64,000 bases of DNA from Hemiscyllium ocellatum (GCF_020745735.1 NW_026867447.1:496001-560000); one strand, 5' to 3'; positions 1,205 to 62,740 are shown, counted from the stretch's first letter. A program made the numbers and translations. Notes: generated by a model not told the origin, from the letters alone.

Positions 1205-1342
1205 GAGGAGAAAGTGAGGTCTGCAGATGTTGGAGATCAGAGCTGAAAATGTGTTGCTTGAAAAGCCAGCAGGTCAGGCAGCATCCAAGGAACAGGAGAT
1301 TCGGGCTCATTCCTGAAGAAGGGCTTATGCCCGAAACGTCGA
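1205..1342. mobile_element. Short Penelope-like-element (PLE) tail insertion inside the CR1, with 15-bp TSD
   Basis: ATATCTTGAAACATG at 1190-1204 and 1343-1357 flanks it. The body is the reverse complement of the PLE 3' end seen at 20880-20978. Confidence 0.85.
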
Positions 1343-1344
1343 AT
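1309..1344 (+). ncRNA. Minimal hammerhead ribozyme motif (PLE type)
   Basis: ATTC-CTGAAGA-A-GGGC-TTAT-GCCC-GAAA-CGTC-GAAT: CUGANGA and GAAA cores, 4-bp stem II, 4-bp stem I, palindromic ACGT helix III. Confidence 0.7.
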
Positions 1345-3117: not shown

Positions 3118-3605
3118 TTAGCAAAAGAATGATTCATAGTTCCTTGCAAGTGGGGCTATTTTGCCTGGAGCTTGGAGACTGGGGTGGGGGCGGTGGGGTG
3201 ACCTTATCGAGGTTTATAAAATCATGAGAGGCGTGGATATGGTGAATAGCCAAGATCCTTTCCCCAGGGTAGGGGAGTTGAAAACTGGAAGGCATAGTCG
3301 AGAGGGAAAAGGTTTAAAAGGGACCTAAAGAGCAACTTTTTCACACAAGTTGTTGCGTGTATGGAATGAGTTGCCAGAGAAAGTCGGGGGGGAGTGGGGG
3401 GGGAGGGGGTGGCTGGGGGAACAGTGCTCATGTAAATACACGTAAAAGGCATCTGGATGGGTCTATGTTTAGGAAGAGTTTAGAGGGATATGAGACAAAT
3501 GCTAGCAAATGGGACTAGATGCGTTCAGGACATCTGGTCAACATGGACAAATTGGAATTAAGGGTTTGTTTCCATCCTGGACATCTCTGTGACTCTATGC
3601 ATCCC
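3118..3605 (+). mobile_element. CR1 LINE 3'-end fragment
   Basis: Parallel to 2600-2997 (GGTGACCTTATCGAGGTTTATAAAATCATGAG ... GACTCTATG tail). Confidence 0.85.
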
Positions 3606-4099
3606 TTTATCCTCAACTGTTTCTCCTCCTCCACTCTGGTTAACAGGGCCCTCATTGATACACTCAATGAATTTACAAAAGACGCGATAAGGGTTCAGCT
3701 GAAATATTTTTAAAAAGGTGGCAGCCACACTGCTAGTAGTTTACAAGTGATGACCAAATCTTCTGAGGAAAACGGAAGAGTTGTATGTCAGACATTTTTG
3801 AATATTTTGAAGTAGTAGAGTATTTGGGAATTTCATCTCTCAAATATCTCGCAATATGAACAGTGTGAAAGACACTGAGAGCAAAAAGATTATTGTATCA
3901 TATTTAACTGGCCTCTTTAGAACATAAGGGCTCAGTGAGAGGAAAAGCAATTCAGGAATTGATCTTCTGAAATGAAGCTGATCTTCTGAATGAACTAAGA
4001 GAGAGGGATTATTTTTGAGCTGCTGACATTAATACATTTACATTGAGCATAAATATGGAACAAGACAAATACAACAAGATTAAAATGTTGATGTCTGGG

Positions 4100-4400
4100 G
4101 GAACAAATCTCATGAGTCTGCCACGAGGGGTCATAGTTTTAAGGTGTTAGGAGGAAGGTATAGAGGAGACGTCAGAGTTAGGTTCCTTACGCAGGGCGTT
4201 GTGAGCGCACAGAATACATTGCCAGAGGTGGTGGTGAAAGCAGATTCATTACAGACATTGAAGTGAATGCTGGACTTGTACGTGGACAACAGTGAATTGA
4301 GGGGTGTGTAGGTTAGTTTTCTTATTTGAAATTAGGATTAATCTTCGGCACAACATCTTGGGACAAAGGGCCTGTTCTGTGCTGTACGTTTCTATGTTCT
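4100..4400 (+). mobile_element. CR1 LINE 3'-end fragment
   Basis: GGTCATAGTTTTAAGGTG ... AAAGGGCCTGTTCTGTGCTGTAC ... CTATGTTCT tail, as in the copies at 6585 and 17790. Confidence 0.8.
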
Positions 4401-4605
4401 TAATTTGAGAGATAATCTGATGAAGTTGGACTGGATGCAGGTATTTGAAGATAAAGTAATGACAAATCAGTGGGAGGATCTCAAAAGTGAGATTCTAAAG
4501 AAACAGCGTAAACATGATCCAACAACAGATAACATTATATTTCCACATCTCGTGCTCCATGGGTGTCCCCAAGCATACGGGGTGACATGAAACAGTAAAA
4601 GAAAG

Positions 4606-4762
4606 TCATGATTTGGAGATGCCGGTGTTGGACTGGGGTGTACAAAGTTAAAAAATCACACAACACCAGGTTGTTCACCTGATGAAGGAGCATCGCTCCG
4701 AAAGCTAGTGTGCTTCCAATTAAACCTGTTGGACTATAACCTGGTGTTGTGTGATTTTTAAC
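4606..4762. mobile_element. Second PLE-type mini-element with partial fold-back and 14-bp TSD
   Basis: ACAGTAAAAGAAAG at 4592-4605 and 4763-4776. Internal inverted repeat AAAATCACACAACACCAGG / CCTGGTGTTGTGTGATTTT. Same family as 38762-38965. Confidence 0.8.
4676..4710 (+). ncRNA. Minimal hammerhead ribozyme motif (second family)
   Basis: CAC-CTGATGA-A-GGAGC-ATC-GCTCC-GAAA-GCTA-GTG: intact cores, 5-bp stem II, palindromic AGCT helix III, 3-bp stem I. Confidence 0.7.
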
Positions 4763-5569
4763 ACAGTAAAAGAAAGATACTGATCCTGACAAAACAATTC
4801 AAAAACGATGGGAAGCTTAGCCTAGAATCTAAATGGGTGAACTGAAAACTAAAAAAAACTTAGAAATGCCAAGGAAGTACAGAGAAATTGTTAATGGGTA
4901 AAATCGACAGGAAAAGAAATGTTTTATCTGTTGATGAGGACCAAAAAGATAACTATGAAAATGATAGGGGTGTCAAAGTAGTGCAAGATGATTAATGTTG
5001 CCTATGCACATTCGCACACTAATTCACATACACAAACCATGATAATCCAATGCATTGCTTATTGTATTATTACTTTAATCACAGTGAATCACGTCACTAT
5101 GTTTGTGATTTATTCCATTTTCATGAATATAAATCTGATGTGGTGAAGACCAATGTGAAAGATTTGTCTTGGGCATCATCCAGGTACTTCTTAAATGCTG
5201 TAATTGTACCAGCCTCCACCACTTCCTCTGGCAGCTCATTCCATACACACACCACCCTCCGTGGTATTGAAGTAGAAATTTACCTTAGATCAAAGATCTG
5301 CATTGAGAGAAGATAGATCAGAACATAAACACTGTATTGGGGAACTGTGTCCCATTGTTACTATGACCATTAAGATAAGGTATTTGGAAATAACAGCCCA
5401 GACAGCTGCACATATTTCTTCAACCACAACCTGAAAGTGGGGAGGAGGGAGATAGAATCTGGGGATGGCTTCAAACAGGACAGTGATGTCATTAAAACCA
5501 AAAAAAGGCCAATACTAGGAATTTCCTAACATGACAGTCATAGTAGAAGAAAGAGCATGAAGATCTAAC

Positions 5570-6195
5570 TTGGAACATAATCCCTGAAAGTTGCCACCCA
5601 GGTTGATAGGGTTGTTAAGAAGGCATATTGTGTGTGAGCTTTTATTGGTAGAGGGATTAAGTTTCGGAGCCATGAGGTAATGCTGCAGCTGTACAAAACT
5701 CTGGTGTGGCTACATTGGGGTATTGCATACTGTTCTGGTCACCGCATTACAGGCAGGATGTGGAAGCTTTGGAAAGGATTCAGAAGATTTACCAGGATGT
5801 TGGCTGGTATGGAGGGAAAGGTCTTATGAGGAAAGGCTGTTTTCATTAGAGAGAAGGTTGAGAGGTAACTTAATTGAGCCATATAACATAATTAGAGGAT
5901 TAGATAGGGTGGATAGTGAGAGTTTTCTTTCCTGGAAGGTGATGGCTAGCACGAGGGGACATAGCTTTAAACTGAGGGGTAAGACAGATGTCAGAGATAG
6001 TTCCGGGATAGGGACCTGGAATGCACTGCCTGCAACAGTAGTAGACTCGCCAGCTTTAAGGGCATTTGTATGGTCATTGGATAAACATGGATGAAAATGG
6101 ATTAGCGTCAGATAAATAGGCTTCAGATTAGTTCCACAGGTCGGCGCAACATCAAGGGCCGAAGGGCCTGTACTGCCCTGCAATGTTCTATGACT
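5570..6195 (+). mobile_element. CR1 LINE 3' portion
   Basis: ORF fragments RSYEERLFSLERRLRGNLIE, STRGHSFKLRG, WNALPATVV; tail GGCCGAAGGGCCTGTACTG...TTCTATG. Confidence 0.9.
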
Positions 6196-9099: not shown

Positions 9100-12000
9100 A
9101 ACATAGAACATGGAACATTACAGTGCAGTACAGGCCCTTTGGCCCTCGATGTGGCGAAGTGTAAAATCAACCTGAAACTCATCTCACCTTCACAATTCCA
9201 TTTTCATCCATGTTTATCCAATGAACATTTAAATGCCCTTAAAGTTGGTGAGTCTCCTACTGTTGCAGGCAGTGTGTTCCATGCCCCCTACTACATTCTG
9301 AGTAAAGAAACTATCCCTGAACATCTGTCCCATATCTATCATTCCTCAATTTAAAGCTATGTCCCCTTATGTTAACCATCACCATTCAAGAAAAAAAGGA
9401 TGCCCTCTGATTATCTAACCCTCTGATTATCTTACAGACCTCAATTAAGTCACCTCTCAACTTTCTACTCTCTGTCAAAAACAGCCTCAAGTCCTTCAGC
9501 TTTTCCTCATAACACCTTCCCTTCATACCAGGTCACATTCTAGTAAATCTCATCTGAACCCTTTCCAAAGCTTCGATATCCTTCCTATAATGCAGTCACC
9601 GGAACTTTACGCAGTACTCCAAAACCAGAGTTTTGGACAGCTGCAACATGACCTCATGGCTCCGAAGATCAATCCCTCCACCAATAAAAGCTAATACACC
9701 ATATGCTTTCTTAACAACCATATCACCCTGGGTGGAAACTTTCAGGGATCTATGTTTGGGGACACCGAGATCTCTCTGTTTATCTACACTGCCAAGAATC
9801 TTACCATTAACCCAGTACTCTGTATTCCTGTTCCTCCTTCCAAAGTGAATCACCTCACACTTTTCCACATTAAACTCCATTTGCCACTTCTCAGCCCAGC
9901 TGTGCAGCTTATCTATGTCCCTCTGTAACCTGCAACATCCTTCGGCAATATCCACAACCCCACCTACCTTAGTGTCATCCGCAAATTTACTAACCCATCC
10001 TTCTATGCCCTCATCCAGTTCATTTATAAAAATGACAAACAGAAATGGCCCCAAAACAGACCTTGCAGTACCCCACTAGTAACTGAACTCTAGGGTGAAC
10101 ATTTCCCATCAACCACCACCCTTTGTCTTCTTTCAGCTGGCCAATGTCTGATCCAAACTGTTAAATCACTGTCAATCCCATGCCTTCGTATTTTATGCAA
10201 TAGTCTACCTTGGGGAACCTTATCAAACCCCTTACTGAAATCCAAATGCACCACATCAACCACTTTACCCTCATCCAGCTGTTTGGTCACCTTCTCAAAG
10301 AACTCTATAAGGTTTGTGTGGCATGACCTACCCTTCACAAAACCATGTTGACTATCCCTAATCAACTTATTCCTTTTGAGCTGATTATAAATCCTATCTC
10401 TTTTAATCATTTCCAGCACTTTACCCACAACTGAAGTAAGGCTCACTTGGAGAAAATTACTAGGGTTGTCTCTACTCCCCTTCTTGTACAAGGGGACAAT
10501 ACTTGCTATCCTCCAGTCTCCTGGCACTATCCCTATTGACAATGACAACATAAAGTTCAAAGCCAATGGCTGTGCACTCTCCTCCCTGGCTTCCCAGAGA
10601 ATCCAAGGATAAATACCATCTGCCTTAAGAGACTTATTTATTTTCCTACTTTCCAGAATTGCTAACAACTCCTCTTTGCGAACCTCAATCCCGTCTAGTC
10701 TAGTCACCTGCATCTCAGTATTCTCTGAGACAACGTAGTCATTTTCCAATGCGAGTACATTGAAAAGAATTCAGTTAGCGCTTTTCCTGTCTCCTCGGAC
10801 TCCACGCACAACCTCCCACTACTGTCCTTGTTTGACCCTAAACTCACTCTAGTCATTCTTTTATTCTTGATATACCTGTAGAAACCTTTAGGTTTTTCCT
10901 TGATCTGACCTGCCAATGACTTTTCACATCCCCTCCTGGCTCTTCTTAGCTCTTTCTTTAGGTCTTTCCTGGCTAACCTATAACTCTCAAACACTCTAAC
11001 TGAGCCTTCACATCTCATCCTAACATATACCTTCTTCTTCCTCTTGACAAGAGATTCAACTTCTTTTGTGGACCACAACTCCCTTACTCAAACACTTCCT
11101 CCCTGCCTGACAGGTACATACTTATCAAGGACACGCAGTAGCTGTTCCATGAATAAGCTCCACATTTCAATTGTGCCCATCCCCTGAAGTTTCCTTTCCC
11201 ATCCTATGCATCCTAAATCTTTCCTAATTGCACCCTACTTGCAACAGTTATACCACTGCTATAACTCTTGCCCCTGGGATATACCTAACCCTTTCCATTG
11301 CTAAAATAAACACAACCAAATGTGGGCACTATCACCAAATGCTCACTAACCTCTGAATCTAATACCTGGCTAGGTTCCTTACCCAGTACCAAATCCAATA
11401 TGGTCTCGTCCATTGTTGGCCTGTCTACATACTGTGTCAGGAAAACTTTCTGCACACATTTGACAAAAACTGATCCATCTAAAGTACACGAACGATAGTA
11501 TTTCCAGTCAATATTTGGAAAGTTAAAGACCCCCATAACAACTACCCTGTTACTCTCGCTCCTATCCAGAATAATCTCTGCTCACCTATCCTCTCCACCT
11601 CTGGAACTATTTGGAGGCCAGCAGAAAAGTCCCAACAAGGTGACATCTCCTTTCCTGTTTCTAACCTCAGCCCATACTACCTTAGTAGACGAGTCCTCAA
11701 ATGTACCTCCTGCCACCGTAGTACTGTCCTGACAAACAATGCCACACCTCCCACTCTTTTACCATCTTCTCTGTTCTTACTGAACCATCTAAATCCCGGA
11801 ACGTGCTCAAACCATTCCTGTCCCTGCTCTATCCATGTCTCCGAAATGGCCATAACATCGAAGTTCCTGGTACCAACCCATGCTGCAAGGTCACCCACCT
11901 TATTCAGGATGCTCCTGACACTTCAAACCACTTCTTGCATGCCAATGCACTCTTGCAACCTTGAAACCATATTTCTGACCTCACCACTCTCAACCACTTG

Positions 12001-13512: not shown

Positions 13513-14721
13513 GTTATAAGTGACTTCTGTCTAGGTATTCTAAATTTCCGGAGAATAGTCCCTGACACTCGGCTAACTACTCTACACTAGGGCCATGGTT
13601 CAGATCAACCGGGATCTGCCTCCACACCCTGCCGACCGCGGACTGTCCTTTAACCCTTGACTTCAAGGGAGACTGTCCACAAGGTCCCGTCCTAGGAGGT
13701 GAACTTCAAGCTGTCAGCACCAGCCCTTATCCCCTCCGGCTACCGCTTTTCCCGTGGCAAATCGAAATGCTGCGAGACACACAAATGGAGCAAAGGATGT
13801 TTATTCAAACTTGCAAGTTTGGACGTCTTCCAAAAGGACTTAGGAAGAATCGCGCGGAAAGGTTTTACAGCAGTAATATTTATACATTATTCTTACATTT
13901 GAAAACATTAGTGACAATTCCATTGGTTAAAACATTTCACGCTTTTCTCTGCCAATTCTTTAATTAAATGTTATATTGTTTTTAACAATTCTGCTGGTTA
14001 AAGCATTTCTTGGTTATCTGCATGTCATAAAAGGGCTTCTATTGTATTTTGCCCTCTGTGTCTAGTTAAAGCATTCCTTGGTATCTTGCCCAAGGTTACC
14101 ATGTTCCTGACATAACAGCGGTGACTTCTGGTTCATGTTCCCATATGGCCTAGTTGAATATCAGTCTCATAATTAGCCTTTACTCATTAAACCTCAGTTT
14201 TAGTACAGAAATTACCTTACNNNNNNNNNNNNNNNNNNNNNNNNNNNNNNNNNNNNNNNNNNNNNNNNNNNNNNNNNNNNNNNNNNNNNNNNNNNNNNNN
14301 NNNNNNNNNNNNNNNNNNNNNNNNNNNNNNNNNNNNNNNNNNNNNNNNNNNNNNNNNNNNNNNNNNNNNNNNNNNNNNNNNNNNNNNNNNNNNNNNNNNN
14401 NNNNNNNNNNNNNNNNNNNNNNNNNNNNNNNNNNNNNNNNNNNNNNNNNNNNNNNNNNNNNNNNNNNNNNNNNNNNNNNNNNNNNNNNNNNNNNNNNNNN
14501 NNNNNNNNNNNNNNNNNNNNNNNNNNNNNNNNNNNNNNNNNNNNNNNNNNNNNNNNNNNNNNNNNNNNNNNNNNNNNNNNNNNNNNNNNNNNNNNNNNNN
14601 NNNNNNNNNNNNNNNNNNNNNNNNNNNNNNNNNNNNNNNNNNNNNNNNNNNNNNNNNNNNNNNNNNNNNNNNNNNNNNNNNNNNNNNNNNNNNNNNNNCA
14701 GAAATTACATTAACCATATCA
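13512..14721 (-). mobile_element. Probable 3' LTR of the ERV (interrupted by assembly gap)
   Basis: Starts TGATAT right after the PPT and ends ATAACA at 13512. Minus strand has CCAAT (13922-13926), TATAAAT (13878-13884), AATAAA (13800-13805) and a downstream TTTGTGTGTCT element. Continuity across the gap is inferred. Confidence 0.6.
14221..14698. other. Assembly gap (478 N)
   Basis: Run of N. Confidence 1.
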
Positions 14722-25205: not shown

Positions 25206-25344
25206 CTGGAAAAGAGAGATAAAGCAATGACACAGATATTTATGATCAGGGACTTTCAGATTTAATGTTTATTCAATGGCACACTTAGAGATTTCACAAA
25301 ACATATTGGGCTGTTTGGCATGAGAAAGATGTGATTATTCTCAC

Positions 25345-25472
25345 CTTCACCAGAGTGACGGCAGCGCTGTAGAAAATACTCAGGAAGAACAAGGTGATGA
25401 ACGTGGAAGCAGTTGTCCAGATGTTGCTGTTATCATCCTCATAGTCTTCAATCCAAGTGCGATCTATTGAAT
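25345..25472 (-). CDS. IGHM: IgM TM1 exon
   Basis: CATAG|ATTCA ... GTGAAG|GTGAG. Encodes DSIDRTWIEDYEDDNSNIWTTASTFITLFFLSIFYSAAVTLVK, the conserved antigen-receptor TM motif. Confidence 0.97.
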
Positions 25473-25979
25473 CTATGAATATAAAGCCGAGAGAACGCAT
25501 TTAGATCGTTTATTGATCCAGATCGATCTATGTGTATCCAAGTCATGTAATTAGAGACCATTACATCTTCATAAAGCAGTCAGGTATTTCTCAAGTGTGA
25601 CTCTTATCTGTATCCATCAGTGCATTATTGACTCTCAGCAAGAAATTACAAATACTGACTGCACATGTTCTTTCTTCATTGTCCATGTCAGAATGTTTTA
25701 AATTAATTTTCTTTTAATCTATTATTTAAGGATATTATTATTTGAGGAATGCTTATTACGAATGATTATTTTAATTATATCATTATATTTTAAATATAGG
25801 CTGTGACAGCACTTTAGTTGAAAATTGTGGCCATCACTGAATAAAAGTTCAAATGTGATTCTCACCTTTATGTATTGGTGACCAATTGCTTGGCAAATCG
25901 TGAATATAAGTGACATCACAGTCAGGACATTGCTTCATATTTTTGTTTGTAGGATCTGTATATTTAGGAATAAGTTTTT

Positions 25980-28199: not shown

Positions 28200-28246
28200 T
28201 TTATTACTTCTGTTGAATTATTAAATGCAACTTTGAGATTTTTATT
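28200..28246 (-). terminator. Secretory-form poly(A) signals
   Basis: AATAAA overlapping the stop codon (28241-28246) and a second AATAAA at 28200-28205 followed by T/GT-rich sequence. Confidence 0.75.
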
Positions 28247-28633
28247 GACATGAATTAACAGTGTCCATCAGTGCAAGTGAAATGTTTACGAAACTCGGTT
28301 TACCGCTGGATTTATCGACTGTTCTGTTGATGATCTTCAATGGAATCGCTTCATGTCCCACCACACAGGAGTAAGAAGCACCGCTGGCCCACTCCTCCGC
28401 TGTAATGGATAACAGGCTGTAGATGAAGAAGGAAGTGTTGTCACTCTCTGCCATCACCTCGGTGTTCTTGTAGTTACTGGGATTCACCGGCTTGTCATTG
28501 TTTGTCCACTTGACGAAGATCTCTCGGGGGGAGAAACCTCTCACTAAACAGGTGAGGGAGAGAAACCTCTGAGCGGAGATTTCTTCTGTTGGTGGCAGGA
28601 GGACCGACACTGATGGCTCCAGCGGATTAATCA
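28242..28633 (-). CDS. IGHM: IgM Cmu4 exon with secretory tailpiece
   Basis: TGCAG|TGATT acceptor. [15 protein letters not shown]...[17 protein letters not shown]...[12 protein letters not shown]...DKSSG, tail [19 protein letters not shown] (N-glycan sequon, penultimate Cys). Internal donor G|GTAAA at 28304/28303 for the membrane form. Confidence 0.98.
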
Positions 28634-29080: not shown

Positions 29081-29389
29081 CTTTCTCCTTGTGGATGGAG
29101 TCTCTCAGCGGAGTCGGTAGATTTTGATGGTTCACCACACATTCAAAAGTAACACCACTCAGCCAGGCTTCAGTAGAAATGTCTAATTTGCTGATCACGC
29201 TGTCGGGATTCTGTCCAGGCTGGTCAGCAATCTCTGAGCTCAGAGGCTTCTTATCTTGTTTCCAGGTCACGCTGACTCCAGGAAGAAAATTGGACACAAC
29301 GCAGGTTAACGTCACCGTCGCTTCCAGTAAGACTTGTTCGATTGGCGGTGGGAGGATTTTAACGGTGTGAGGGTGGCACTCGGTATCTT
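29081..29389 (-). CDS. IGHM: IgM Cmu3 exon
   Basis: CATAG|AAGAT ... AAAG|GTGAG; 309 nt, phase 1-1. [30 protein letters not shown]...W...FECVVNH. Confidence 0.97.
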
Positions 29390-31369: not shown

Positions 31370-31681
31370 CCTGGAGTGCGGTGATGTTTTTACTTTGAAT
31401 GTTCTCTTCGTGAGTGACCTGGCAGGTATAGACTGCGCTGTTGTACCATTCACCATAAGGGACCATCAGCCGACTCGTCACCGAGAAGTTCCCGTTCGCC
31501 TCACACACGGGAGACGTGAAGAAGCCAGAATCCAAGCGTCGGCCATTTTTCAACCAAGTCACGTTGATTGCCTTCGGATGGAAATCGATGATTGAACAAA
31601 CGACAGTTGCAAACTTGCTGCTTGCGATTTCTTCACTGGAGCTCACAGTTAGGAGAAGAGTTGGTGGGAGAGGACCTGTAC
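31370..31681 (-). CDS. IGHM: IgM Cmu2 exon
   Basis: TAAAG|GTACA ... CAGG|GTAAG; 312 nt. [19 protein letters not shown]...[17 protein letters not shown]...YTCQVTH. Confidence 0.97.
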
Positions 31682-31789: not shown

Positions 31790-34710
31790 GCAGAGTGCTG
31801 GAGAAGCTGGGATCCACACAGAAAGATCATCAGGACAATGTGAAAGGCTAAAATTATAGGACACAGCAAGGGAGTCAAGGAGGCATAGAAACTATAGGCC
31901 GGTAACATCAGAAGGGAGATAGCAACATTGGATGGTATTCGTTTTAATGACAGAGTCTGATGATCAAGGCAGATGAATTACCGGCATAAATGAGGAAATG
32001 ATGCTGTTGCTATCACGGAGACATATTGAGAGCGGGGCAGGAGTGGCTATTCAATTTTCCAGGATTTAGTGCCTTCAGGCGAGACAGGGAAAGATGGAAA
32101 AGGATGGGGGCAGGGGTTTGCGGCACGGAATGTTGCTTCTGTCACAATTCTGACAAGAGTATTTTAGGCTGTAAAGAGAAATGAAATCATAGATACCTCC
32201 TCGAACAAAGGCAAATGGACAGTACTTCAAAACCAAAATACAGCAAACATAACTACTGGGAGAGCACGATAGGCCTTACTATAGATCCAAAAGACCAAGT
32301 GCAAATACATGGATAAATTTCAGAGATATGTAAATTAAATAGGGGAATGAGAAAAGAGGTTTTTAACTTCCTCAGCATAGGCTTGGATATTCATTTTGTC
32401 TAACGTTTAGAGGGAGCACAATTCTGAAAATGCCCCCAGGAGAATATTTAAACAAAGTATGTGTTAATACAGAGAATTTTAATCCAGACCTTGCAAGAGA
32501 GGGGTGAACCTGAACTTAACTTTTGGGAATGAAGTCGACCCAGTGGGTAAAACATCAATGGTGGTGCACTTTGCAGACAGTGATCGTAAATCAGTTGGAT
32601 TTCAGATTGTACTGCAAAGGAATAGAAATTGGCCCAAAGTTCTGAAAAGGGGAAGGACAATTTTAGTAAGATCAGGTAATGACTTAACCAGAGTGGACTG
32701 GAAGCTGACACTTATTGGTAAATCTGAGTCAGAGCAGTGTGAAACATTTAAGAAAGAGACAGGAAAATCATAGGGAGGACATTTCCCAGGAAGCCACTGA
32801 ATGGGACCAAGAATGTAACGTGCTCTGGATACCAAAGGGCATGGAGGGTGAGATAAGGAGAAACAAGGGAGGCTTCCTGTCTATACTGAAATCTCAAAAC
32901 AATAGAAATTAGTATGGAGTACAGAACGCGCAAGGGGGAGTTTGAAAGACAAAGGAATTAGAAGAGCAAAAGGGACCATGAGAAAATAATAGGAGTCAAA
33001 ATAAAGGAAAATATTTTTAAAAGTTACAGGCTCATTCATAATAAAAGAATTATTCGGGAAACAGTAATGCCCATTAAGTGTTATTATTGGAGTGGAGCCG
33101 GAGGATTAGGTTGTGGTCAAAACGAATGTGTTGTGTCAGTGTTCACTAGTAAGAGGGACAATGTGGGGACAGAAATCATGGAGGAGTGTTGTGATGTACT
33201 TTCAGAAATTAGGGCACATGACGTGATGTTCTGTGTTGTCTTGCTAAATGAAAAGTGGTTATATTTCCAGGGCAGATGAAAAGTATACCAAGCGGTTGAG
33301 CGATGCAAGGGATGAAATAGTTGGGTCGCTAACAATAATTTAGAATTACTGTCTGGCCACAGCAGTTGTGCCAAGTGAGTGTAGATCAGCCAACGTTGCA
33401 CTGTTACGCAGGACAAAGGAAGGGATAAATAATGAAAACACAGATCTGTCAAGCTAGTCTCAGTGGTAGGGAAACTATTGAAAAGTGAAATTAGTCTTCA
33501 TTTGGAAGATAAATCAACAATTTTCAGCATAGTTTTATTGAGAGAAAGTCATGTGTAACAATTTGATAGTAGTTTTCAGAGAGATAACTCGATGTCCAGA
33601 TGATAGCAATAATCAGAGCCAATGGGATCCGAGTTAATTTGACAGATTGGATCGAGAACTGGCTGAGTGATGGGAGCAGGGGATAATAGTCATCGGGTGT
33701 CTGGGTGACTGGGAATCTATGTCTCCTGGTGTTCTGTAGGGATTGGGGTTGATTTCCACGTTATTTCTCTTACATACCAATGATTGAGACTCAAATTTAG
33801 GAGGATTAACCAGTGAATTCACAGATGAAATGAAAACTGTCATGTTGGTAAGTCATGAGCATTATGGCTTTAGATTGTAGGAGGATATAAAAGGGTTGGT
33901 TGTATGTGAAGAGAAGTTGCAAATGGAAATTATTCTGGATAAATGTAAGGTAATGTAATTCGGCAGAAGAATCTGTGAGGTATGACATTTTGAATGGTGG
34001 AACCCTGGAAAGGCCTGAGGATCTTTGGTGCATGTACCCACCGATCCCCTATAGTACTGTGTCGTCTGGATAAAGAGACTAAGGAGGTGGGAGGATATTT
34101 GCTTTTATTAGCCTAGACATTGACAATGAAGAATCGGGAGATGATACTGGAACTTGATAGAACACTGGTTAGGCCATACTGAAGCGTTGTGTGCATGTTA
34201 TCGAAGGAATGTGATTACACTGAAGGCAGTATTGATGAGATTTGCCAGGATCTTGCCTGGGTTGGAGGGTTTTAGTTATGAAACTAGATGAGATAGACAG
34301 GGGTTTTCCTTGGAGCAGAGGAGAATTAGGGAGAAGATTATCATGATGTCTAGAATTATTTTAGGCATAGACTGGGTAAACTGGATGAAACCTTTCCCCT
34401 TGATGGAGAGATCAATGCCTCAGGGGCACAGGGTGAAGGTAAGGCCAGGAGGTTCCAAGTGGATCTCAGGGGAAAACAAAATCAAACAGAGGGTGGTGTT
34501 AGCCTGGAGCTCAGCACCTATAAGTCATGTAGAGACTGAGCCCCTCATAATAAGTATGAAGTATTGAGATGCATCCTTGCAAGGGCAAGTCACACAAGGC
34601 AATGGATCATGTGCTGGCACATGAGACTGGAATAGTTAGGTGGCTGTTATTGATAGGCGTAAACTGGATGGATCAAAGGGCCTTTTTCCTGTACTGTATA
34701 AGGTGATTCT
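31790..34710 (+). mobile_element. Old, long CR1 LINE filling the Cmu1-Cmu2 intron (antisense to IgM)
   Basis: Collinear decayed matches to the endonuclease start (~31950), the RT QHGF/SC region (~33530) and the tail AAGGGCCTTTTTCCTGTACTG (~34680). Confidence 0.8.
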
Positions 34711-34787: not shown

Positions 34788-35096
34788 CTGGACATGGCAT
34801 TTCTTTGCTCTTGTGTGACCCGCTGTGTTGAACCTCACAGTAGATTTTGCTGGGGCAATCTACCGCTGACCCGGGCAGGGTTAACTGGCTGCTCAGGGTG
34901 TAGGTTCCCTTCTTGTTTCTCACTGATGGGTAAGTCTTCAATCCACCATTCGTGATTAGCACCCCACCTTTCTTCCAGGTTACCTTGGTGACGTCTGGGG
35001 AATAGTCCATCACCAAACAACCAAAGATTGTCGAACCGGTGCTGTGCTCCTCACAGGAGGAGACCAGGCCATAAAGCGTGGGGGGAGATGGTGTCT
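34788..35096 (-). CDS. IGHM: IgM Cmu1 exon
   Basis: TGTAG|AGACA ... CCAG|GTACG; 309 nt. [15 protein letters not shown]...[10 protein letters not shown]...W...[17 protein letters not shown]...IYCEVQH...MPCP. Confidence 0.97.
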
Positions 35097-42857: not shown

Positions 42858-44469
42858 TGGAGTTCATGAGTGGATTACTTTAATTAATTCGAAATTTGGT
42901 TGGTAACATAATTCACTATAGCAGTTGTTTCCCGAAGAATGACTCTTCAGTTGATATTTTGTTGTAAAATGTAACTATTTATTTAAAATGCACAGATTGG
43001 GAACACCGAAAGCACTGTGCAGGTTAAATAATTCAGTTAATGTTTTATTTTTATCCTGCAAATCCAGTTTAATCAGGGACATAACAATTAATTAACTCAA
43101 GTTATATGTGAAACTGATCAAAGCAGTGAAACTGATCTGTTCTTCATAGAATTGAGCAGAATTTCCAAATGGTCTTTGCCAATGATCTTTTCCAGCCAGA
43201 AAATATGTATGTAGTGTACAGCGGAATTGAAAGGTGTTTCTTGATCAATTATAGCACAGTCATGGTATTTTTGCTCAAGAGCAAGAACTATTAGAACATT
43301 AGACTTTTGAAGTTCTATTTATATTTCTCTATGACTTGTAAACTGTTTAAAGACAGACCTTGTGATTGAACTAGATAGTTGAGTTTCGAATTTGGATTGT
43401 AAAGCATGGATTAGATTAATCCTTAATTATTTATTTTAAGTAAAAATAGCACCTGAAGGTATCTGTTTTCCCTTCATTTCTAAAACCTGTGCGATTTGCC
43501 TTTCACTTTATAATAGACTTTATGAAATTTTAACTCGCATGCTGATTGCATTGAATGAGGAAAGAGCAGTTCACTGTCACCAACCGTGTTAACATTGCAA
43601 AAACAATGTAGAAACCAGAAACGGTTTCCCAAATATAACACATTTAATGTTACCCAAGCACAGTCCCTCCTCAACAGATCAACGATCACCAGATCACAAC
43701 ACGGTATGTTTGCAGCAGAACTAGCTCTGCAAACATTTTCAACAGAATCAAGAACATGATGTCACCTCACAAATAAAACCAAATTGAAGTCTAACAAAGC
43801 TGCTCAGAATCAAGCAAACTAATGATTAAATTGAATAGAAATAACAGGTCATAATAGCAACCTTGTTTGTGAGGGGACTTAACACTTAAAGCTGTAACGT
43901 TTCTGGCAATAGTTCAATTTATTTCTAACCTGCACACCCTTCCTGATCATGACAATCTTGTGCAGCGCACAGTAGAGTGGGGTTGAAGGCATATATTGAT
44001 TAATCACCTCATGGTCAAAACAAAATTACTGAATGGACAAATATTACCACATTATAATTTTAAGTTAGTTTCAATTACGTGATCTGATCAATTCTGCAGT
44101 TTCAGATTTAGGTCCCAAATTTTATTTTGAATGAGGCTACTCAAAACAAAAGTCAGTTAGTTTACAATTAGAACGGAGTTTTTTTTAAAAAGTCAATCCA
44201 TTAAAAACTCGTTTTTTTTCATTTCTCACACATCTGGGTTTCTGCCTTAAGTTGTTTTTCAGACCGTTACAAATGGATGTCCTGTTTTCAATCAAGCAGA
44301 GAAAAATGTGTCATATAAGTTTAACAAATGCAGAAATGATTCATGAAAAACAAAAGAACTTCACAAATATTGGTAATGAAAAGTATTCCAGAGAGTCAAT
44401 CTCCTCACCAGAAAGAAAACATCGATTCAGAAAGCATGAAAACGCAGATCAATTTCACAAACTGAATAA

Positions 44470-44755
44470 GAATCCAATCAACTCAATTCAACAGAATCAA
44501 GGAAAATAAAATCAGAATCCAATCAACTCAAAACAACAGATTTGAATGAAACATAATCAGAATCCAACCAATTCAATTCAACAGAATCAAATAAAACAAT
44601 TTCAAAAGTCAATCAACACAATTCAACAAAACCAAGTAAAAACAAAGTCAGAATCCAATCAACACAGTTCAACCCGAATCAACTAAAACAAAGCCAAAAT
44701 CCAATCAACTCAATTCAACAGTAAAACAAACTCCGAATCTAATCAACAGAATGCA
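44470..44755. repeat. Degenerate 45-46-bp minisatellite, ~6.5 units, in the J-C intron
   Basis: GAATCCAATCAACTCAATTCAACAGAATCAA-type units starting at 44470, 44515, 44560, 44605, 44651, 44697, 44735. Confidence 0.9.
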
Positions 44756-45265
44756 ATATAGCACCGCAAGAAACTTTGATGACAGTTTCTAACCTGCTTG
44801 TCATCAACAAAATTAACAAAATAAATGAGAAAATATAATCATGGTAAGAACATATATTCAAGAAATGAATAATGATATTTTAGCATATTTTAGTCATGTT
44901 TGGTAATATCTTGAACATTTTTGAATTTGTAGCATTTGTTGTTGATAATAAAACTCACAGTCAGGGTGTCACTGACATTAAACATTATTTATAGCTGACT
45001 GATTAAGAGACATTAGGTGTTTCAAGTGACCCAGCCACATAGAATGTCCATCTGATCAAAAAAAAGAGATACACTGAGCAAATGACTCCATCATCACCAT
45101 TTTAACTATTTGCTGAGCCTTAACTGAAGTCTATAATCAGTCTGAACAAAAATCAATCCGAACCAAACCAAACTCAGCACAGAATCTGAGTTTCATTTAA
45201 TTCAGAAATTAGTCACATGAATAGAAAGTTTTTAAAAAGTCACTAAGAATGGTCAAAGTTCTTAC

Positions 45266-45313
45266 CTGAAGTCACTGTCACCATGGTCCCTTGGCCCCAG
45301 TAGCCAAGATAGT
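45266..45313 (-). CDS. IGHJ: JH gene segment
   Basis: AC TAT CTT GGC TAC TGG GGC CAA GGG ACC ATG GTG ACA GTG ACT TCA G|GTAAG = YLGYWGQGTMVTVTS. Confidence 0.98.
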
Positions 45314-45352
45314 CACAGTGTTACATTCTCTGGACTGGATCACACAATAACT
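45314..45352. promoter_or_regulatory. JH 23-bp-spacer RSS
   Basis: CACAGTG (45314-45320), 23 nt, ACAATAACT (45344-45352). Confidence 0.95.
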
Positions 45353-45679
45353 AGCTCTGCATAAAACAAATCAAACATCTACCATCATTTTAAATTTTCA
45401 GAACCACAGGCAAAATAAAGTCACGATAAATCTTCATCACATAATTGCGCGAGTGAATTTTGATCATTCTTGATAAATTTTAATACTGTTTTATACTTCA
45501 CAGAGTAACCCATCAGCTGATTCTCAAAATCCCCAACTGGTGTATCAATAATTACCCAACACTTTTACAAATTAAATAGTGATACTGGCATAAAACCCCA
45601 CAGAACTAATACTGCACTGCAAGTAAAGACGGTTTGTAGAAGTAATCACTGACTAGTTTCAAACAATGGAGGCTGAATA

Positions 45680-45707
45680 GGTTTTTGTATTGATCATAAT
45701 TGCAGTG
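45680..45707. promoter_or_regulatory. D 3' 12-bp-spacer RSS
   Basis: Minus strand CACTGCA, 12 nt, ACAAAAACC (consensus nonamer). Confidence 0.92.
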
Positions 45708-45722
45708 TCACCCCAGCTATAT
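45708..45722 (-). CDS. DH gene segment (D2 type, 12/12), ATATAGCTGGGGTGA
   Basis: 15 nt between two 12-bp RSSs. Reading frames give I* (stop), YSWG and IAGV. Confidence 0.92.
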
Positions 45723-45750
45723 CACTGTGAGACACGTTGTGTCAAATACT
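45723..45750. promoter_or_regulatory. D 5' 12-bp-spacer RSS
   Basis: Plus strand CACTGTG, 12 nt, TCAAATACT. Confidence 0.85.
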
Positions 45751-46053
45751 ATGACAGACTGTAAACTGTAAAATGCAAATAATTTCTTCACTTCCTAGAA
45801 AGCAGTGGTTCAGACTCCTCGAAAAATGATTTGGTGCATTATTTCAGCTTTTACTATTCATTGTATTTTGAAAGCTTGGAATACTTTTCCAGGTTTGGTC
45901 TGCATTTAACTTGACAATCAACACGAAGAAGGTAGAAAACAATTATACATTTGTACAAACTAGCACGACTGGATTGTGTTTAAATTGCATCTCACATTAT
46001 TTCTCGCTCCTGCCACGGTAGAAATCACCAATTTGAGATAAATCCTTGTCAGT

Positions 46054-46091
46054 GGTTATTGTATGAGGATGTCGCTGTGCACAACACTGTG
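46054..46091. promoter_or_regulatory. 22-bp-spacer RSS 3' of V(D)
   Basis: Minus strand CACAGTG (46091-46085), 22 nt, ACAATAACC (46062-46054). Confidence 0.95.
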
Positions 46092-46401
46092 ACCCACTCT
46101 CTTGCACAGTAATAGATGGCGGTGTCTTCGATCTTCAGGTTAGTCATCTCCAACGCGAAAATGTTCTTTGAAGTGTCTTTGGACGCACTAAATCGATCCT
46201 TAATCGCTGGTGCATAGTTATTGCTGGATGAACTATAGTAGTACACCAGCCACTCCAGACCCTGGCCGGGAACCTGGCGGACCCAGCTCATGAAGCTGCT
46301 GCTGAGATCGAACCCGCTGGTTTTACAGGTCAGTTTCAGGCTGCCTTTGGAATGGCCAGTCTCTGCCTCTGGCTGGGTCAAAACAACCTCCGACTGGACA
46401 C
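46092..46401 (-). CDS. IGHV: VH exon (open), ending in a probable pre-joined D1 remnant
   Basis: TAAAG|GTGTC acceptor. [51 protein letters not shown]...RFSASKD...[12 protein letters not shown], with both Cys and the FR2 Trp present. Confidence 0.98.
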
Positions 46402-46530
46402 CTTTAAAAAAGACAAGAAATAAACCATGAGCGTTAATGCTGATGAAAGGATGGCTGTGCCTTTTACATTCCTGAGGTAGACTAACATTGAGACAGCAAC
46501 AAAGACAGACTTAAACAAAAAAACACTCAC

Positions 46531-46579
46531 ATGATAAGAAAGTCAGTAATAAACTGAGAAAAATTGTCGACACAATCAT
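46531..46579 (-). CDS. IGHV: VH leader exon
   Basis: ATG at 46579; MIVSTIFLSLLLTFLS-T|GTGAG donor, 129-nt intron; splices to give ...LSCVQS. Confidence 0.95.
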
Positions 46580-46665
46580 TCTGATAACTTCTGGGAAGCG
46601 GTTCTGTCAAGATCTTTCTAAACAAAGCCGATCCCGGAGTGTTGAATTACGGTCCAGTGCCTAGG

Positions 46666-46771
46666 ATTTATATGGCTATCGGAAAGGGCAGGCTCACAGC
46701 TTCCGCCTGTTGGTTTCCTGCTGGAGACTGAGACTGGATCCTGGTCTCAGCTTGCACAGCCCCAACACATG
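46666..46771 (-). promoter_or_regulatory. Putative VH promoter (TATA, ETS-like sites, E-box; no octamer)
   Basis: TATAAAT 46666-46672, GGAAG 46700-46704, CAGGAAA 46714-46720, CACATG 46766-46771. No ATGCAAAT seen in the proximal 300 bp. Confidence 0.6.
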
Positions 46772-46942
46772 GGCGCATGTCTTTACCAGGTTACGCTTAA
46801 ACATGGATATATACACATCTTGGGATATTTATTTTGCTGAGTAGCTTCTTTGGGAGTGTTTTTTTTTAAAATGGTGGAAGTAAAATTGAGTACCTTCAGG
46901 TCTATTTCACATGATAGTTGCAAGTATTTTGTTTTAAAATAA

Positions 46943-47397
46943 ATTCATTCGGAAGTTAGCTCCCTTTATTTCTACATTCATTCACAAACAGATAAAACTA
47001 AAATCGAAGTTCAAACGTATTACTAGCTAGTAAAACAATTGAGTTTTTATTTCCCAGGACACTGCCAGTCTCTGTCCCACTACAAAATAACACGTAATTC
47101 ATACTAAACATTTCAAAATTCAATTTAGGCAACTGAATACAGAGCATGTCCAAAGTGATTATATTCAGAATATTCAATTAGAAGTTAACTCCCTTTAATT
47201 CTACATTCCACCACAAGCAGATAAAGCTAAAAAGAACTTCAATCATATTATTAACCAACAAAATGAGTGACTTTATTTTTGCTGTCACTCAACGTCTCTC
47301 TCACTTTACAAAATAATATCCCATTTCTAATCTGCGTTTCTAAATTCCATTTAGGCAACCTAATATGGAGCAGGACTAAAGTGATTATGTTCAGAAT
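46943..47397. repeat. Old 229-bp tandem duplication upstream of the VH promoter
   Basis: Copies 46943-47171 and 47172-47397 share CTCCCTTTA-TTCTACATTC, CAGATAAA, ACAAAATAA, ATTTAGGCAAC, AAAGTGATTAT-TTCAGAAT. Confidence 0.85.
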
Positions 47398-51683: not shown

Positions 51684-52219
51684 GCATAGAGTGGACAACA
51701 TCACAATTTGCTGTAACATGAAACTCGCAACCACTGTGAACCATCGCCTGATGGTTCAGAATTTAACAAGGACCTAGCAAGGTTCGTGGAATGAACCGAC
51801 GAGTGATACATGAAAATTAACAAAGGCATTTCTGAAATGATTAATTTAGCTAGGAAGAATGTAGAGACTTCACATCTCTGTTTGCATTTCAATATACTAT
51901 AAATTACTTTTCTATTATATCCTAAAATACTCGAGTCTTTGTTCATATTTAATACACTCTATCTTGTTCCGGGGTTAAGATAGTTTCTTTATTTATTTCA
52001 CTCAAGACTGGATGCTGTACTTTTGCCTCAGTATTGACCAAACTCGGTTTGGTGCCAGCTTATATCACTTGAGCTGCTTTTTCAGGAAGTGAATTTCTCC
52101 ACCTGTTAAGTCAAAATAATCTGTTCATGCTTAGATTGAAATAAATCCTATTAATATCATCCCAAATTCAGACTCGGTTATTTTGTATTTATTCATTGGA
52201 ATTGAACAGGAATATGACC

Positions 52220-53265
52220 GGCTGTTCTTGGTGGAGTGGGAGGGGGAGTTAAAGTGTTCAGCCACGGGGCCGTGGGGTTGGTTGGCACGGGTGTCCCAGA
52301 GATGTTCTCTGAAATGATCCGCAAGTTAGTGTCCTGTCTCCCTGATGCAGAGGAGACCACATCAGGTGGAACAGACACAGTGGATGACATTTGTGGAAGT
52401 ATAGATAAGTTTCTGTGGGATGTGGAAGGATCATTTGGGGCCTTGTCGGAGGTGAGGGGGAGGTGTGGGCGCAGGTTTTGCACTTCCTGTGGTGACAGGG
52501 GAAGGTGACAGGGGTGGGGAGTGGGCTGGTGGGGGGCATGGACCTGACGAGGGAGTCGTGGAGGGAATGATGCCTTCGGAATGCAGATAGGTGTAGGGAG
52601 GGAAATATACCCCGAGTGATGGGGTCTGTTTACAGTGGTGGAAGCAGCAGAGGATGATATGATGTATGCAAGGTTGGTGCGGTGGAAGATGAGGACCAGG
52701 AGGGGTCCCTGTTGCGATTGGAGGGATGGGGTTCAAGGGCATCATCGACCACGTGGGAGGGGAAATTGCATTCTTTGATAAAGGATCTGGGATGTTTTAT
52801 GGTGGAACTGGACCTCCTGGGAGCAGATGCGGTGGAGGCAGAGGAATTGAGAATAAAGGATGGCATTTTTACCTGAGGTCGGGTGGGAGGAGGTGTAGTC
52901 CAGGTAGCTGTGGGAGTCAGTGGGCTTGTAGTAAATGTTTAGTTGGTCACTGGAGATAGAGATGGAGAGGTCTAGGAAAGGGAGGGAGGTGTCCGAGATG
53001 GTCCCTGTAAAGTTTAGGTCAGGGTGGAAGGTTTTAGTAAAGTTGATGAACTGTTCAACCTCCTAGTGGTTGCATGAGGTGGCATTGATACAGTCATCAA
53101 TGTAGCGGTGGTAAAGGTGGGCAATGATACCGGTGTAGCTGTGGAAGATTGACTGTCCCACATATCTGACGAAGAGGCAGGCATAGCTGGGGTCCATGGC
53201 TACCCCTTTGGTTTGGAGGAAGTGGGAGGATTGAAAGGAAATGTAGTTGAGGTTGAGCATGTACT
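52220..53265 (-). mobile_element. Degenerate Penelope-like element (RT core and GIY-YIG remnants)
   Basis: FLQTKGVAMDPSYACLF...RYIDD (53063-53260), HRKCKTCAHT, and nucleotide similarity to 20330-20510. Confidence 0.85.
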
Positions 53266-54419
53266 GCTTGGGTTGGCGTGACAGGAAGAAACTGAGGGCT
53301 TCGAGGCCTCCATCATGGCGTTTGGATGTGTACAGGGCCTGGACATTCTGTTCATTCTGGGGCTTATCAATAGCTTGCAGTTATTATGGAACTGCAAGGG
53401 CAGTGGCTGGGAACTCGGAGAAACCAATGGTTCAGTCTTCTGCTTGAAGCAAATTTTGACCAGAACATTTAAACACCACAAAGCTCACTGTAGGAAATGC
53501 CAGTGCTGCAACTTTTAATAATATTTGAAACTTGGTTAAAAATAGGGATTTTTAGTTATAGTTTCTGAAATAATCAAGACAAGAATTAACTGTTAGAACA
53601 AGCTCTATCAAAGAGAGAAGATTTGCAAGGTTTGAAACCACACAGTGCTGTGGTTTATTTGAATTCAATGTTGGTCAGATTTAGATACAGCCAAGGTGAT
53701 CTCTCCATATATTGATTCTGTTAATCGGACACACCAACATACCTGTCTGTACTAAACTGTATTATTTGTTTAGTTGATCAAAATTTAGGAAATAGATCAA
53801 ACAGAATGTATTTGGGTGGGAAGGTGATGGATACAGAAGACAGAATCAAAAGCTGGGAACATTAAATCTGAAGAGGGAGTAACAAGTAGTACAAGATCAA
53901 AGACATGAAAAGGTGCATGTCAATGTGTTCCAGACGTTAGTGAATCGAATGAGCTTGTTAGATCGTCGAGAGACTCGTCCAACGACATCCTGGAATCAGA
54001 CCGTGAAATAGAGATCGAAAGGTCGATTTGCAAATGTCACTTCAATGTAATCACTTCACACTCTGTGTCCTGATCTAGGCCACATTGGCAGATGTTTCTG
54101 CCAGATTGTATCCCCTGGGTTTATTTTCTGATCAGAAGTGAGATGTGTGGCTTGATGCTGGCACATAGAAACAGGAAGTTGCGCGCCAGCTGAGAATGAT
54201 ACACCAGGCGCTACTTTCCGTATTATCAGCACAAACAGTCTCCCTACCTCTGAGGGTGAACACACTGACAGTGTCAAGAACAAACGGACAGTTTGCTGTT
54301 GGTCTCAACATTGTATTCAATTCCATTCCCATTTTCCAGAATGAAGCAGAAGAGATTATTTCAGCTAGAGTAAATTATCTGTCAGAGAGATAAGAAGAGA
54401 TATCATCGGGTGAAAGGAG

Positions 54420-61500: not shown

Positions 61501-62740
61501 TTTGGGTTCATGAAAGGCAGGTCATGTTTAACTGATTAATTGGAATTCTTTGAGGTCATAATGAGCGTGGTAGACAATGGGGAACTGGTGAACGTGGTGG
61601 ATCTGGATTTCCAAATGGCATTCAGCAAGGTGCTGCACAAAAGGCTGCTGCATAAGATAAAGATGCACAGTGTTACAGGCAATGCATTAGCATGGACAGA
61701 AAACTGGCTAACTAACAGAATGCAAAACATGGGGATAAATGGGTGTTTTTCTGGTTGGCAATCAGTGGCGAGTGGTGTGTCTCAGGGATGAGTGTTGGGA
61801 CTGCAATTGTTTACAATTCAGGTCGATTGCTTCGAGTTAGAGATCCAAGTGTAGTGTGTTGTAGTTCGCAGAAGGCACTTAAATGAGTGATAGAGCAAAG
61901 TGTGCAGGAGGATATAGACAGGTTAAGTGAGTGGGCAAGAGTCTGGCAGATGGAGTACAATGTTAGTAAATGTGAGGTTCTCCATTTTGGGAGGAATAAT
62001 AACAAACAGAACGCTGCTGTGCAGGGGGACTTGGCTGTTCTTGTGCATGAAACACAAAAGTATGGTTTGCAAGTACAGTAGCTAATTAGGAAGACAAATG
62101 GAATAGTGTCCTTCATTGGCAGTGGATAGAGTTTAAAATTAGGACTTTCTGCTGCAGCTGTATAGGGCGCTGGTGTGACCATGCCTGGAGTACTCTGTAC
62201 ACTTTTCATCACCTTACATGAGATGGCATTGGGGTGGGAGTTTGCTGAGGAGGTTGATTATGTTGATTCTGGAAATGAGGGGGTTGGCTTGTGAGGAGAG
62301 ATTGAGCAGACTGGGATTGTACTCATAGGAATTCAGAACAATGTGGGAGGGGGGTTGTAAAATTATAAATGGGATAGATAAGACAGAAGCAGGGAGGCTA
62401 TTTCCACTGGTGGGTGAAATTAGAACGATGGGGCATAACCTCAAAATAAGGGCAACAGATTTAGGACTGAGTTGAGGATCAACATCTTCACCCAAAGGGT
62501 TGTGAAGCTGTGGAATCCCCTGCCTAGTGAAGCAGCTGAGGCCAACCTGTTGAATGTTTTAAAGGTAAAATAGATTTTTTAACAGTAAAGGAATGGAGGG
62601 TTATAGTGAGCGGGTGGGTAAGTGGAATCTTAGTCCATTGAAAGATGATCCATGATGATATTGAAAGGCAGAGCAGACTCGTGGGGTCAGATGGCCTACT
62701 CCTGATCGTATTTCTAATGTTTGGATGTTGTTATGTTCTA
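61500..62740 (+). mobile_element. CR1 RT and 3' end
   Basis: VDLDFQMAFSKVLHKRLLHK, WQMEYNVSKCEVLHFG; tail GATGGCCTACTCCTG...TATGTTCTA. Confidence 0.9.

Follow-up and report, generated by a model that had tools for sequence, protein, structure and literature searches.

The window that we have analyzed is a stretch of 64,000 nt from the genome of Hemiscyllium ocellatum (GCF_020745735.1, NW_026867447.1:496001-560000); all coordinates are counted from its first letter. It contains a cluster-type IgM gene, in which a V-set exon, four C1-set exons, a secretory tail and a TM1 exon are found on one strand within about 21 kb. All the features of the cluster (leader, V, one D, J, four Cmu exons and a transmembrane exon) are on the minus strand, and all of them are open.

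A TATAAA motif is present at 46672-46667, 5' of the leader. Leader exon 1 (46531-46579) has its ATG at 46579-46577 and a GT donor at 46530, and its translation, MIVSTIFLSLLLTFLS(C), matches the leader of the Chiloscyllium punctatum protein P0001. It is followed by an intron of 129 nt (46402-46530) with GT..AG ends. The V exon extends from 46401 to 46092 and ends with TGT GCA AGA plus GAGTGGGT. Its V-derived part (46098-46401), which reads VQS EVVL...YYCAR plus GA, gives a Pfam V-set match with E=9.5e-18. This V has GHSKGS in FR1, SSSFMS as CDR1 and YYYSSSSNN as CDR2. The last six nucleotides of the exon, GTGGGT (46092-46097), are identical to the last 6 nt of a D1 segment of C. punctatum, ATACTACAGTGGGT, and are fused in frame (GAG TGG GT). 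This D1 remnant is followed at 46054-46091 by a recombination signal sequence (RSS) derived from the 3' side of D1: the heptamer CACAGTG (46091-46085), a spacer of 22 bp (46084-46063) and the nonamer ACAATAACC (46062-46054). It acts as a 23-type RSS.

Exactly 303 nt (45751-46053) separate this RSS from the next one, the 5' RSS of D2 (45723-45750), which is formed by the nonamer AGTATTTGA, a 12-bp spacer and CACAGTG. The D2 coding segment, ATATAGCTGGGGTGA (45708-45722), may be read as I*LG*, YSWG or IAGV in its three frames. The 3' RSS of D2 (45680-45707) contains CACTGCA, a 12-bp spacer and ACAAAAACC. Another interval, of exactly 327 nt (45679-45353), leads to the J RSS (45314-45352), with AGTTATTGT, a 23-bp spacer and CACTGTG; our RSS scan scored its heptamer 7/7 and its nonamer 7/9. 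The J segment, YLGYWGQGTMVTVTS, is found at 45266-45313 and has a GT donor at 45265. A previous reading, made from the sequence only, had described a single free D (12/12) with gaps of 303 and 327 bp, and a V followed by an RSS with a 22-bp spacer. Direct reading and the RSS scan agree with this description to the base.

The constant region exons are found about 10 kb downstream of J, so the intron between J and Cmu1 has roughly this size. Cmu1 (34788-35096, Pfam C1-set, E=1e-14) has been delimited by its AG/GT sites. Cmu2 (31370-31681, C1-set, E=1.5e-18) has an approximate acceptor, and the splice sites of Cmu3 (29081-29389, C1-set, E=8.8e-14) have been read directly. Cmu4, with the IgM secretory tail and its stop codon (28242-28633, C1-set, E=2.7e-22), has been placed from its ORF and acceptor. 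The stretch bearing the TM1 exon (25342-25491, ...NIWTTASTFITLFFLSIFYSAAVTLVKV) was found by a pattern search of the minus-strand translation; these limits are those of the stretch, not exon ends. The sequence-only reading had considered all exons to be intact, and the Pfam domains, the open frames and the AG/GT sites bear this out.

Some other features of the window should also be mentioned. A 45-bp tandem repeat with 5.7 copies and 76% matches is located at 44465-44721, about 0.5 kb into the J-Cmu1 intron; the matching region of one C. punctatum locus (L001, see below) is alignable. A run of 478 N at 14221-14698 is either an assembly gap or a masked stretch. Upstream of the cluster, a short ORF at 61540-61788 has a weak reverse-transcriptase match (RVT_1, E=0.0012, below the Pfam cut-off) and probably represents a retroelement in decay. 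The GC skew is strong, reaching +0.34 and -0.40 in 2-kb windows, at 1-6000, 10001-12000, 32001-34000 and 52001-54000; these stretches are probably strand-biased repeats.

In a canonical split IgM cluster, V has its own 23-RSS, and a free D1, with a 12-RSS on its 5' side and a 23-RSS on its 3' side, lies between V and D2. The cluster in the window departs from this V-D1-D2-J layout: a free D1 and a V-type RSS are both absent, and all that remains is the 3' end of D1 with its 3' RSS. The signals that are left still obey the 12/23 rule (VD1-22/23, 12-D2-12, 23-J). A scan of the whole 64-kb window for heptamer-spacer-nonamer combinations gave no second D, no 12/23 element of the D1 type and no other credible immunoglobulin RSS, and tblastn of the same window with its own Ig domains gave no second cluster. 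A hidden D1 or a second cluster elsewhere in the window may therefore be ruled out.

For comparison we have used four loci of C. punctatum, L001 to L004. They were reached through a protein search with the read-through ORF of the V exon, whose nearest matches were C. punctatum gene models (83% for the best one). Non-coding DNA of the window is 90-96% identical to the C. punctatum contigs. Two of the loci are split: L001 (BEZZ01001580) and L004 (BEZZ01002017). Both come from a different species and share about 91% identity with the window cluster, as its paralogues or orthologues; the exact V end and D1 that it had before the join are therefore deduced from them. In L004, the V segment has AGAGAC as its end and an RSS of the V type, whose spacer is 23 bp long; V is followed by D1, ATGCGACAGCGGGT, by D2, ATATAACTGGGGTGA, with 12/12 RSSs, and by J with a 23-RSS. 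D1 ends in CAGCGGGT, and its 3' flank consists of CACAGTG, the spacer TTGTGCATAGCGACATCCTCAT and the nonamer ACAATAACC. V and D1 have the same layout in L001, whose D1 is ATACTACAGTGGGT. The 5' RSS of D2 has the same sequence and place in both loci as in the window. Identity is about 90-94% across the upstream region, V, the D1-D2 interval, D2, J and the J-C intron; on the other hand, L001 and L004 keep what the window does not have: a 23-RSS after V, about 360-440 bp of spacer between V and D1, and D1 in full.

The position of the difference is clear from the alignment with L001, which consists of two blastn blocks. The first one (window 46857-46098, L001 3720-4482) covers V through AGAGA, and within it the two V segments are collinear and 91% identical. 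The second one (window 46098-45714, L001 4919-5304) starts at the A of ...AGTGGGT and covers the 3' RSS of D1, the D1-D2 interval and part of D2. The blocks are collinear and overlap by a single nucleotide, 46098: collinearity is lost precisely where the V coding sequence ends, and is recovered within D1. The window lacks 436-437 bp of L001 (362 bp of L004), which comprise the V RSS, the V-D1 spacer, the 5' 12-RSS of D1 and the first 7-8 nt of D1. The sequence-only reading had already proposed that V was joined to D1, and this break at the V end and inside D1, seen against both split loci, supports the proposal.

The sequence that follows V in the window is also of the D1 type. Its 38-nt RSS agrees with the 3' RSS of D1 at 36/38 positions in L001 and 37/38 in L004, and aligns with the V RSS of neither locus. 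The following 304 nt show 92.4% (L001) and 93.8% (L004) identity with the DNA that lies downstream of D1, while the D1-D2 interval of the window has no meaningful alignment with the sequence downstream of V in these two loci. The sequence-only reading had predicted that AGTGGGT should be the 3' end of D1, as is indeed seen in ATACTACAGTGGGT, and that the spacer TTGTGCACAGCGACATCCTCAT should be that of the 3' side of D1. In fact, this spacer differs from the D1 3' spacer by one mismatch and does not match the V spacer of L001 or L004. The same reading had considered the contrary case, in which the 303-bp interval would resemble V-D1 sequence; the interval is 92-94% identical to D1-D2 sequence. 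The RSS and the interval after V being of the D1 type, D1 was once present, and a one-D cluster or a simple deletion of D1 is rejected as an explanation. On these alignments, V is fused to the tail of D1 in the assembled genome, which would leave two cut-and-join steps instead of three.

The junction may be described base by base. V has been trimmed by 1 nt and D1 by 7-8 nt, and neither N nor P bases have been added. A46098 is ambiguous, as it may come from V or from D1 (a microhomology of 1 nt), so the D1 remnant is either the 6 nt GTGGGT or 7 nt if this A is counted. The sequence-only reading had counted 8 nt beyond the CAR codons. The sequence it gave, GAGTGGGT, is right; however, a split V of this subfamily already ends in AGA GAC, so only GTGGGT (6 nt, or 7 with the ambiguous A) goes beyond a normal V end. 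Two signals have been removed, the 23-type RSS of V and the 12-type 5' RSS of D1, and the third one, the 3' RSS of D1, is untouched. The two breakpoints fall on the coding side, no more than 1 and 8 nt away from a heptamer border, and the RSS pair obeys the 12/23 rule. We estimate that a random deletion in the V-J region, of about 1.5 kb, would place its endpoints in this way in about 1 in 10^4 cases. Such a placement therefore indicates a RAG-type deletional coding joint.

The layout might also have arisen without RAG, from an ordinary deletion in which D1 was lost by slippage or end-joining, or from an ancestral cluster which never had a D1. The 1-nt microhomology (A) at the junction would agree with an ordinary deletion, and an unrelated deletion does exist in the family: in L001, the 3' half of D2 is gone, together with its RSS. 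Nevertheless, an ordinary deletion would have to place both endpoints on the coding sides of two RSSs that form a legal 12/23 pair, removing two signals precisely and keeping the third, and the D1-type RSS and interval 3' of V, where V-type sequence is absent, do not agree with a cluster that had one D from the start. We consider explanations of this kind extremely improbable.

The deletion in L001 deserves a separate description. At L001 5270-5330, the 3' half of D2, the D2 3' RSS and about 190 bp have been lost. The sequence jumps from ATATAGCTG to ATGTGTTACTCTGTG, and AGCTG is found at both edges in the version present in the window. As D1 and J, both with 23-RSSs, could not then be linked, L001, otherwise a split locus, must be a dead cluster unless the assembly is wrong here. 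L004 is probably a pseudogene in spite of the intact appearance of its D1, D2 and J signals: its V heptamer is degenerate (CGCAGCG, L004:4463-4510), and the gene model P0017 is out of frame past ...KGRF. The two remaining loci are VDD-J germline-joined clusters. In them (L002:4445-4510 and L003:5670-5735), V continues through D1-like and D2-like bases into a 3' RSS of the D2 type, which consists of CACTGCA, a spacer of 12 bp and ACAAAAGCC or ACAAAAACA; next comes J, which is free and has a 23-RSS. The non-canonical heptamer CACTGCA, found at 45701-45707 in the window and also in L002, L003 and L004, is present in every cluster examined, and represents a conserved departure from CACAGTG. In the whale shark (Rhincodon typus), the V protein of gene model P0004 ends in ...YYCARDWGGSLHYWGQETMVTVTA, with V, D and J in a single exon; this is possibly a fully germline-joined VDJ gene.

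We have also compared the Logan contigs of four public runs with positions 45000-47000 of the window. Two of these runs (X3 and X6) come from the organism of the window, the other two (X12 and X14) from two other organisms. In all four of them, contigs stop at 46098 in two different ways. Those on the D1-RSS side continue, in reverse complement, into ...TACTGGTCTACATCATTGTG ATACTAC, which corresponds to the 5' part of an unjoined D1 and its heptamer (CATTGTG). Those on the V side continue with C CACAGCG AGAGGAACCAGGGCTG, and so represent a V which is unjoined and has an RSS of the V type. These contigs point to split paralogues with the same V end (AGAGAC) and the same D1 (ATACTAC+AGTGGGT) in the species of the window and in two other organisms. 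The contigs break at 46098 because both flanks are common to the split paralogues. In X6, total depth at 46097 equals the depth of a single contig, which continues into an unjoined D1.

Two contigs span the junction. One of them, record 14 of X14 (organism D), covers 45994-46139 with 9 mismatches and no gap. The other one is a contig of 129 nt from X3 (sample S3, same organism as the window), which spans the V-D1 junction (window 46094-46100), omits 4 nt of it and differs at 4 other places. It represents a second VD1-joined cluster or allele, with a shorter D1 remnant, and possibly an independent join. None of the contigs listed for X3 and X6 has the window's own junction, even though sample S4, from which X6 derives, contains junction words, so that absence elsewhere carries no weight. 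These words come from a test of 31-mers with a 66-nt query, in which only 4 words were sampled, so its power is low. Among five S4 libraries, X5 contains 4/4 of the junction-spanning words, and X6, X26, X27 and X10 contain 1/4 each. The runs of samples S1 to S3 gave 0/4 in this low-power test of 4 words, though about 55% of the words from the 1.5-kb stretch are present in them, as large a share as in S4. Run X25, from a further organism, contains 2/4, which may be the non-specific ones.

These results bear on whether the join is in the germ line at all. A lymphocyte clone with a somatic VD1 rearrangement might have found its way into the assembly, or V and a D1 flank might have been stitched together by mistake when the genome was assembled. 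In shark thymocytes, somatic VD-D-J intermediates are common (PMC2435157), and the junction words are found in one individual only, S4, in the 4-word test. Against this, somatic joins are polyclonal and would not form a contig consensus, and the junction has no N bases. Neither a somatic origin nor an assembly error agrees well with flanks that are collinear with the split clusters for kilobases on both sides, or with a contig of another organism that spans the same junction without a gap. We find both explanations very unlikely. The join is likely to be germline, judging from the assembly, the libraries of one individual and the bridging contig in another species.

The age of the join is a different matter. 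The join could be of recent origin and not yet fixed, so that the sequenced individual has it and others do not, and it could be one of several independent V-D1 joins in this V subfamily. The second junction, 4 nt shorter, in another sample is a pointer toward several joins, but we regard this proposal as a whole as rather unlikely. If it were true, germline recombination of the RAG type would be an ongoing and recurrent process in this lineage, not an ancient accident.

Taken together, the locus is very probably an IgM minilocus in which V and D1 were joined in the germ line by a RAG-type deletion, and which would complete its assembly in two RAG steps. Recombination of the V(D)J type in the germ line would have used the 23-RSS of V and the 5' 12-RSS of D1. 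The coding joint would fuse V, minus 1 nt, to the last 6-7 nt of D1 with no added bases; both signals and the V-D1 spacer, about 437 bp in all with the trimmed bases, would be lost, and the 3' RSS of D1, with its 22-bp spacer, would be left intact at the end of VD1. The resulting cluster is VD1(23)-(12)D2(12)-(23)J. B-cell precursors would then finish the gene with two joins, VD1 to D2 and D2 to J, in either order. A direct join of VD1 to J (23/23) would be barred by the 12/23 rule. Junctional diversity would arise at two borders, not three. CDR3 would have one junction fewer and a start biased to CAR-E-W. The sequence-only reading had suggested that an in-frame Glu-Trp is fixed at the start of CDR3. 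The frame is correct (GAG TGG GT), but the dipeptide is a bias and not a fixed feature, as trimming and N addition may still alter the coding end of VD1 during its join to D2.

A further question is whether the cluster is used. The join could be real and germline, and the cluster nevertheless an evolutionary relic, seldom or never rearranged or expressed, which adds nothing to the repertoire. Among the mixed split and joined heavy-chain genes of horned shark, no expression of those that are joined was detected (PMC2193156). None of the runs recorded as RNA contains the stretch, and no RNA specific to this cluster is found among the runs searched; X5 and X10 are guessed to be RNA. No octamer (ATGCAAAT or ATTTGCAT, with up to one mismatch) is present within 330 bp upstream of the leader, and a pN/pS of about 0.69 in the comparison with the V of L001 does not indicate clear constraint. 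On the other hand, decay would be expected in a long-dead gene, while here all exons, splice sites and the four remaining RSSs are intact: the joint reads ...YYCAR E W in frame without a stop, and leader, V, J, Cmu1-4, secretory tail and TM1 are open with AG/GT sites. The VD1 heptamer is perfect, the nonamer next to it is identical to the D1 nonamer of L004, and the region upstream of the cluster is about 90% conserved with respect to the split clusters. We therefore think it doubtful, on balance, that the cluster is a relic.

Transcripts of the V family appear to be present in another organism. Run X14 has a very high depth over the V exon, and in one of its contigs 129 nt are absent between 46398 and 46528 (cut +3), as they would be if the leader intron of this family had been spliced out. 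It also contains many J-to-V joints with diverse inserted letters (window 45301-46105). In these respects X14 behaves like lymphoid RNA, and the joints are somatic VDJ transcripts of the V family. Those listed end at 46097-46105 with longer D1 pieces, so their source is split family members of that organism. One joint, from 45707 to 46105, looks like a VDD-J form.

Germline-joined clusters are well known in cartilaginous fishes. Partly and fully joined IgH clusters have been attributed to the activity of RAG in germ cells (PMC2193156, PMC4279169, PMC5192425), and germline-joined antibody genes are standing evidence that the V(D)J recombinase acts in shark germ cells. VD-J, VD-DJ and VDJ forms have been described in horned shark, skates and ratfish (reviewed in PMC5192425 and PMC4279169). 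The cluster in the window shares with them the cluster-type IgM gene, a coding joint in the genome, the loss of signals, trimmed ends like those left by RAG, and remaining segments which keep their RSSs. It differs in having only the first of the three joins (VD-D-J). In the searchable literature, the term VD-D-J appears only as a somatic intermediate (PMC2435157).

The sequence-only reading had mentioned a nurse shark IgM group with pre-joined VD. Two papers do not support this: split V-D and D-J sequences were amplified from Groups 1-5 (PMC2435157), and no canonical IgM gene of this species is germline-joined apart from IgM1gj (PMC5192425). The nurse shark primer RSS-D1 corresponds to the sequence 3' of D1 (PMC2435157), and its reverse complement, ATACCGACATCCTCATTC (...CGACATCCTCAT...), contains a motif similar to the D1-type spacer of the window, an independent hint of the D1 origin of the latter. 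The somatic 1R VD-D-J intermediates of Group 2, found in thymocytes and B cells (PMC2435157), also result from recombination between the V 23-RSS and the D1 5' 12-RSS and keep the 3' RSS of D1. They are somatic, polyclonal and marked by N regions, whereas the join in the window belongs to an assembled genome and has no added bases.

A similar case is that of the germline-joined NS4 (kappa) light-chain genes of nurse shark, where joined and split genes of one family are also close in sequence; this closeness supports the derivation of joined genes from split ones by recombination in germ cells (PMC2193156). NS4 differs in that a complete VJ join of a light chain is found there, not a partial join of a heavy chain. 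In the heavy chains of horned shark, dissection of the junctions was considered difficult (PMC2193156). Heavy-chain junctions have long been judged too divergent for it, and in the window the event can be read base by base with the help of split relatives at 91-94% identity. This junction could contribute to a census of the frequency and order of germline joins, in which a single locus is an example and not a principle. In summary, the cluster is a further example of the pre-joined antibody genes known for a long time in sharks: Its germline VD-D-J form has seldom been spelled out, but the phenomenon is the same.
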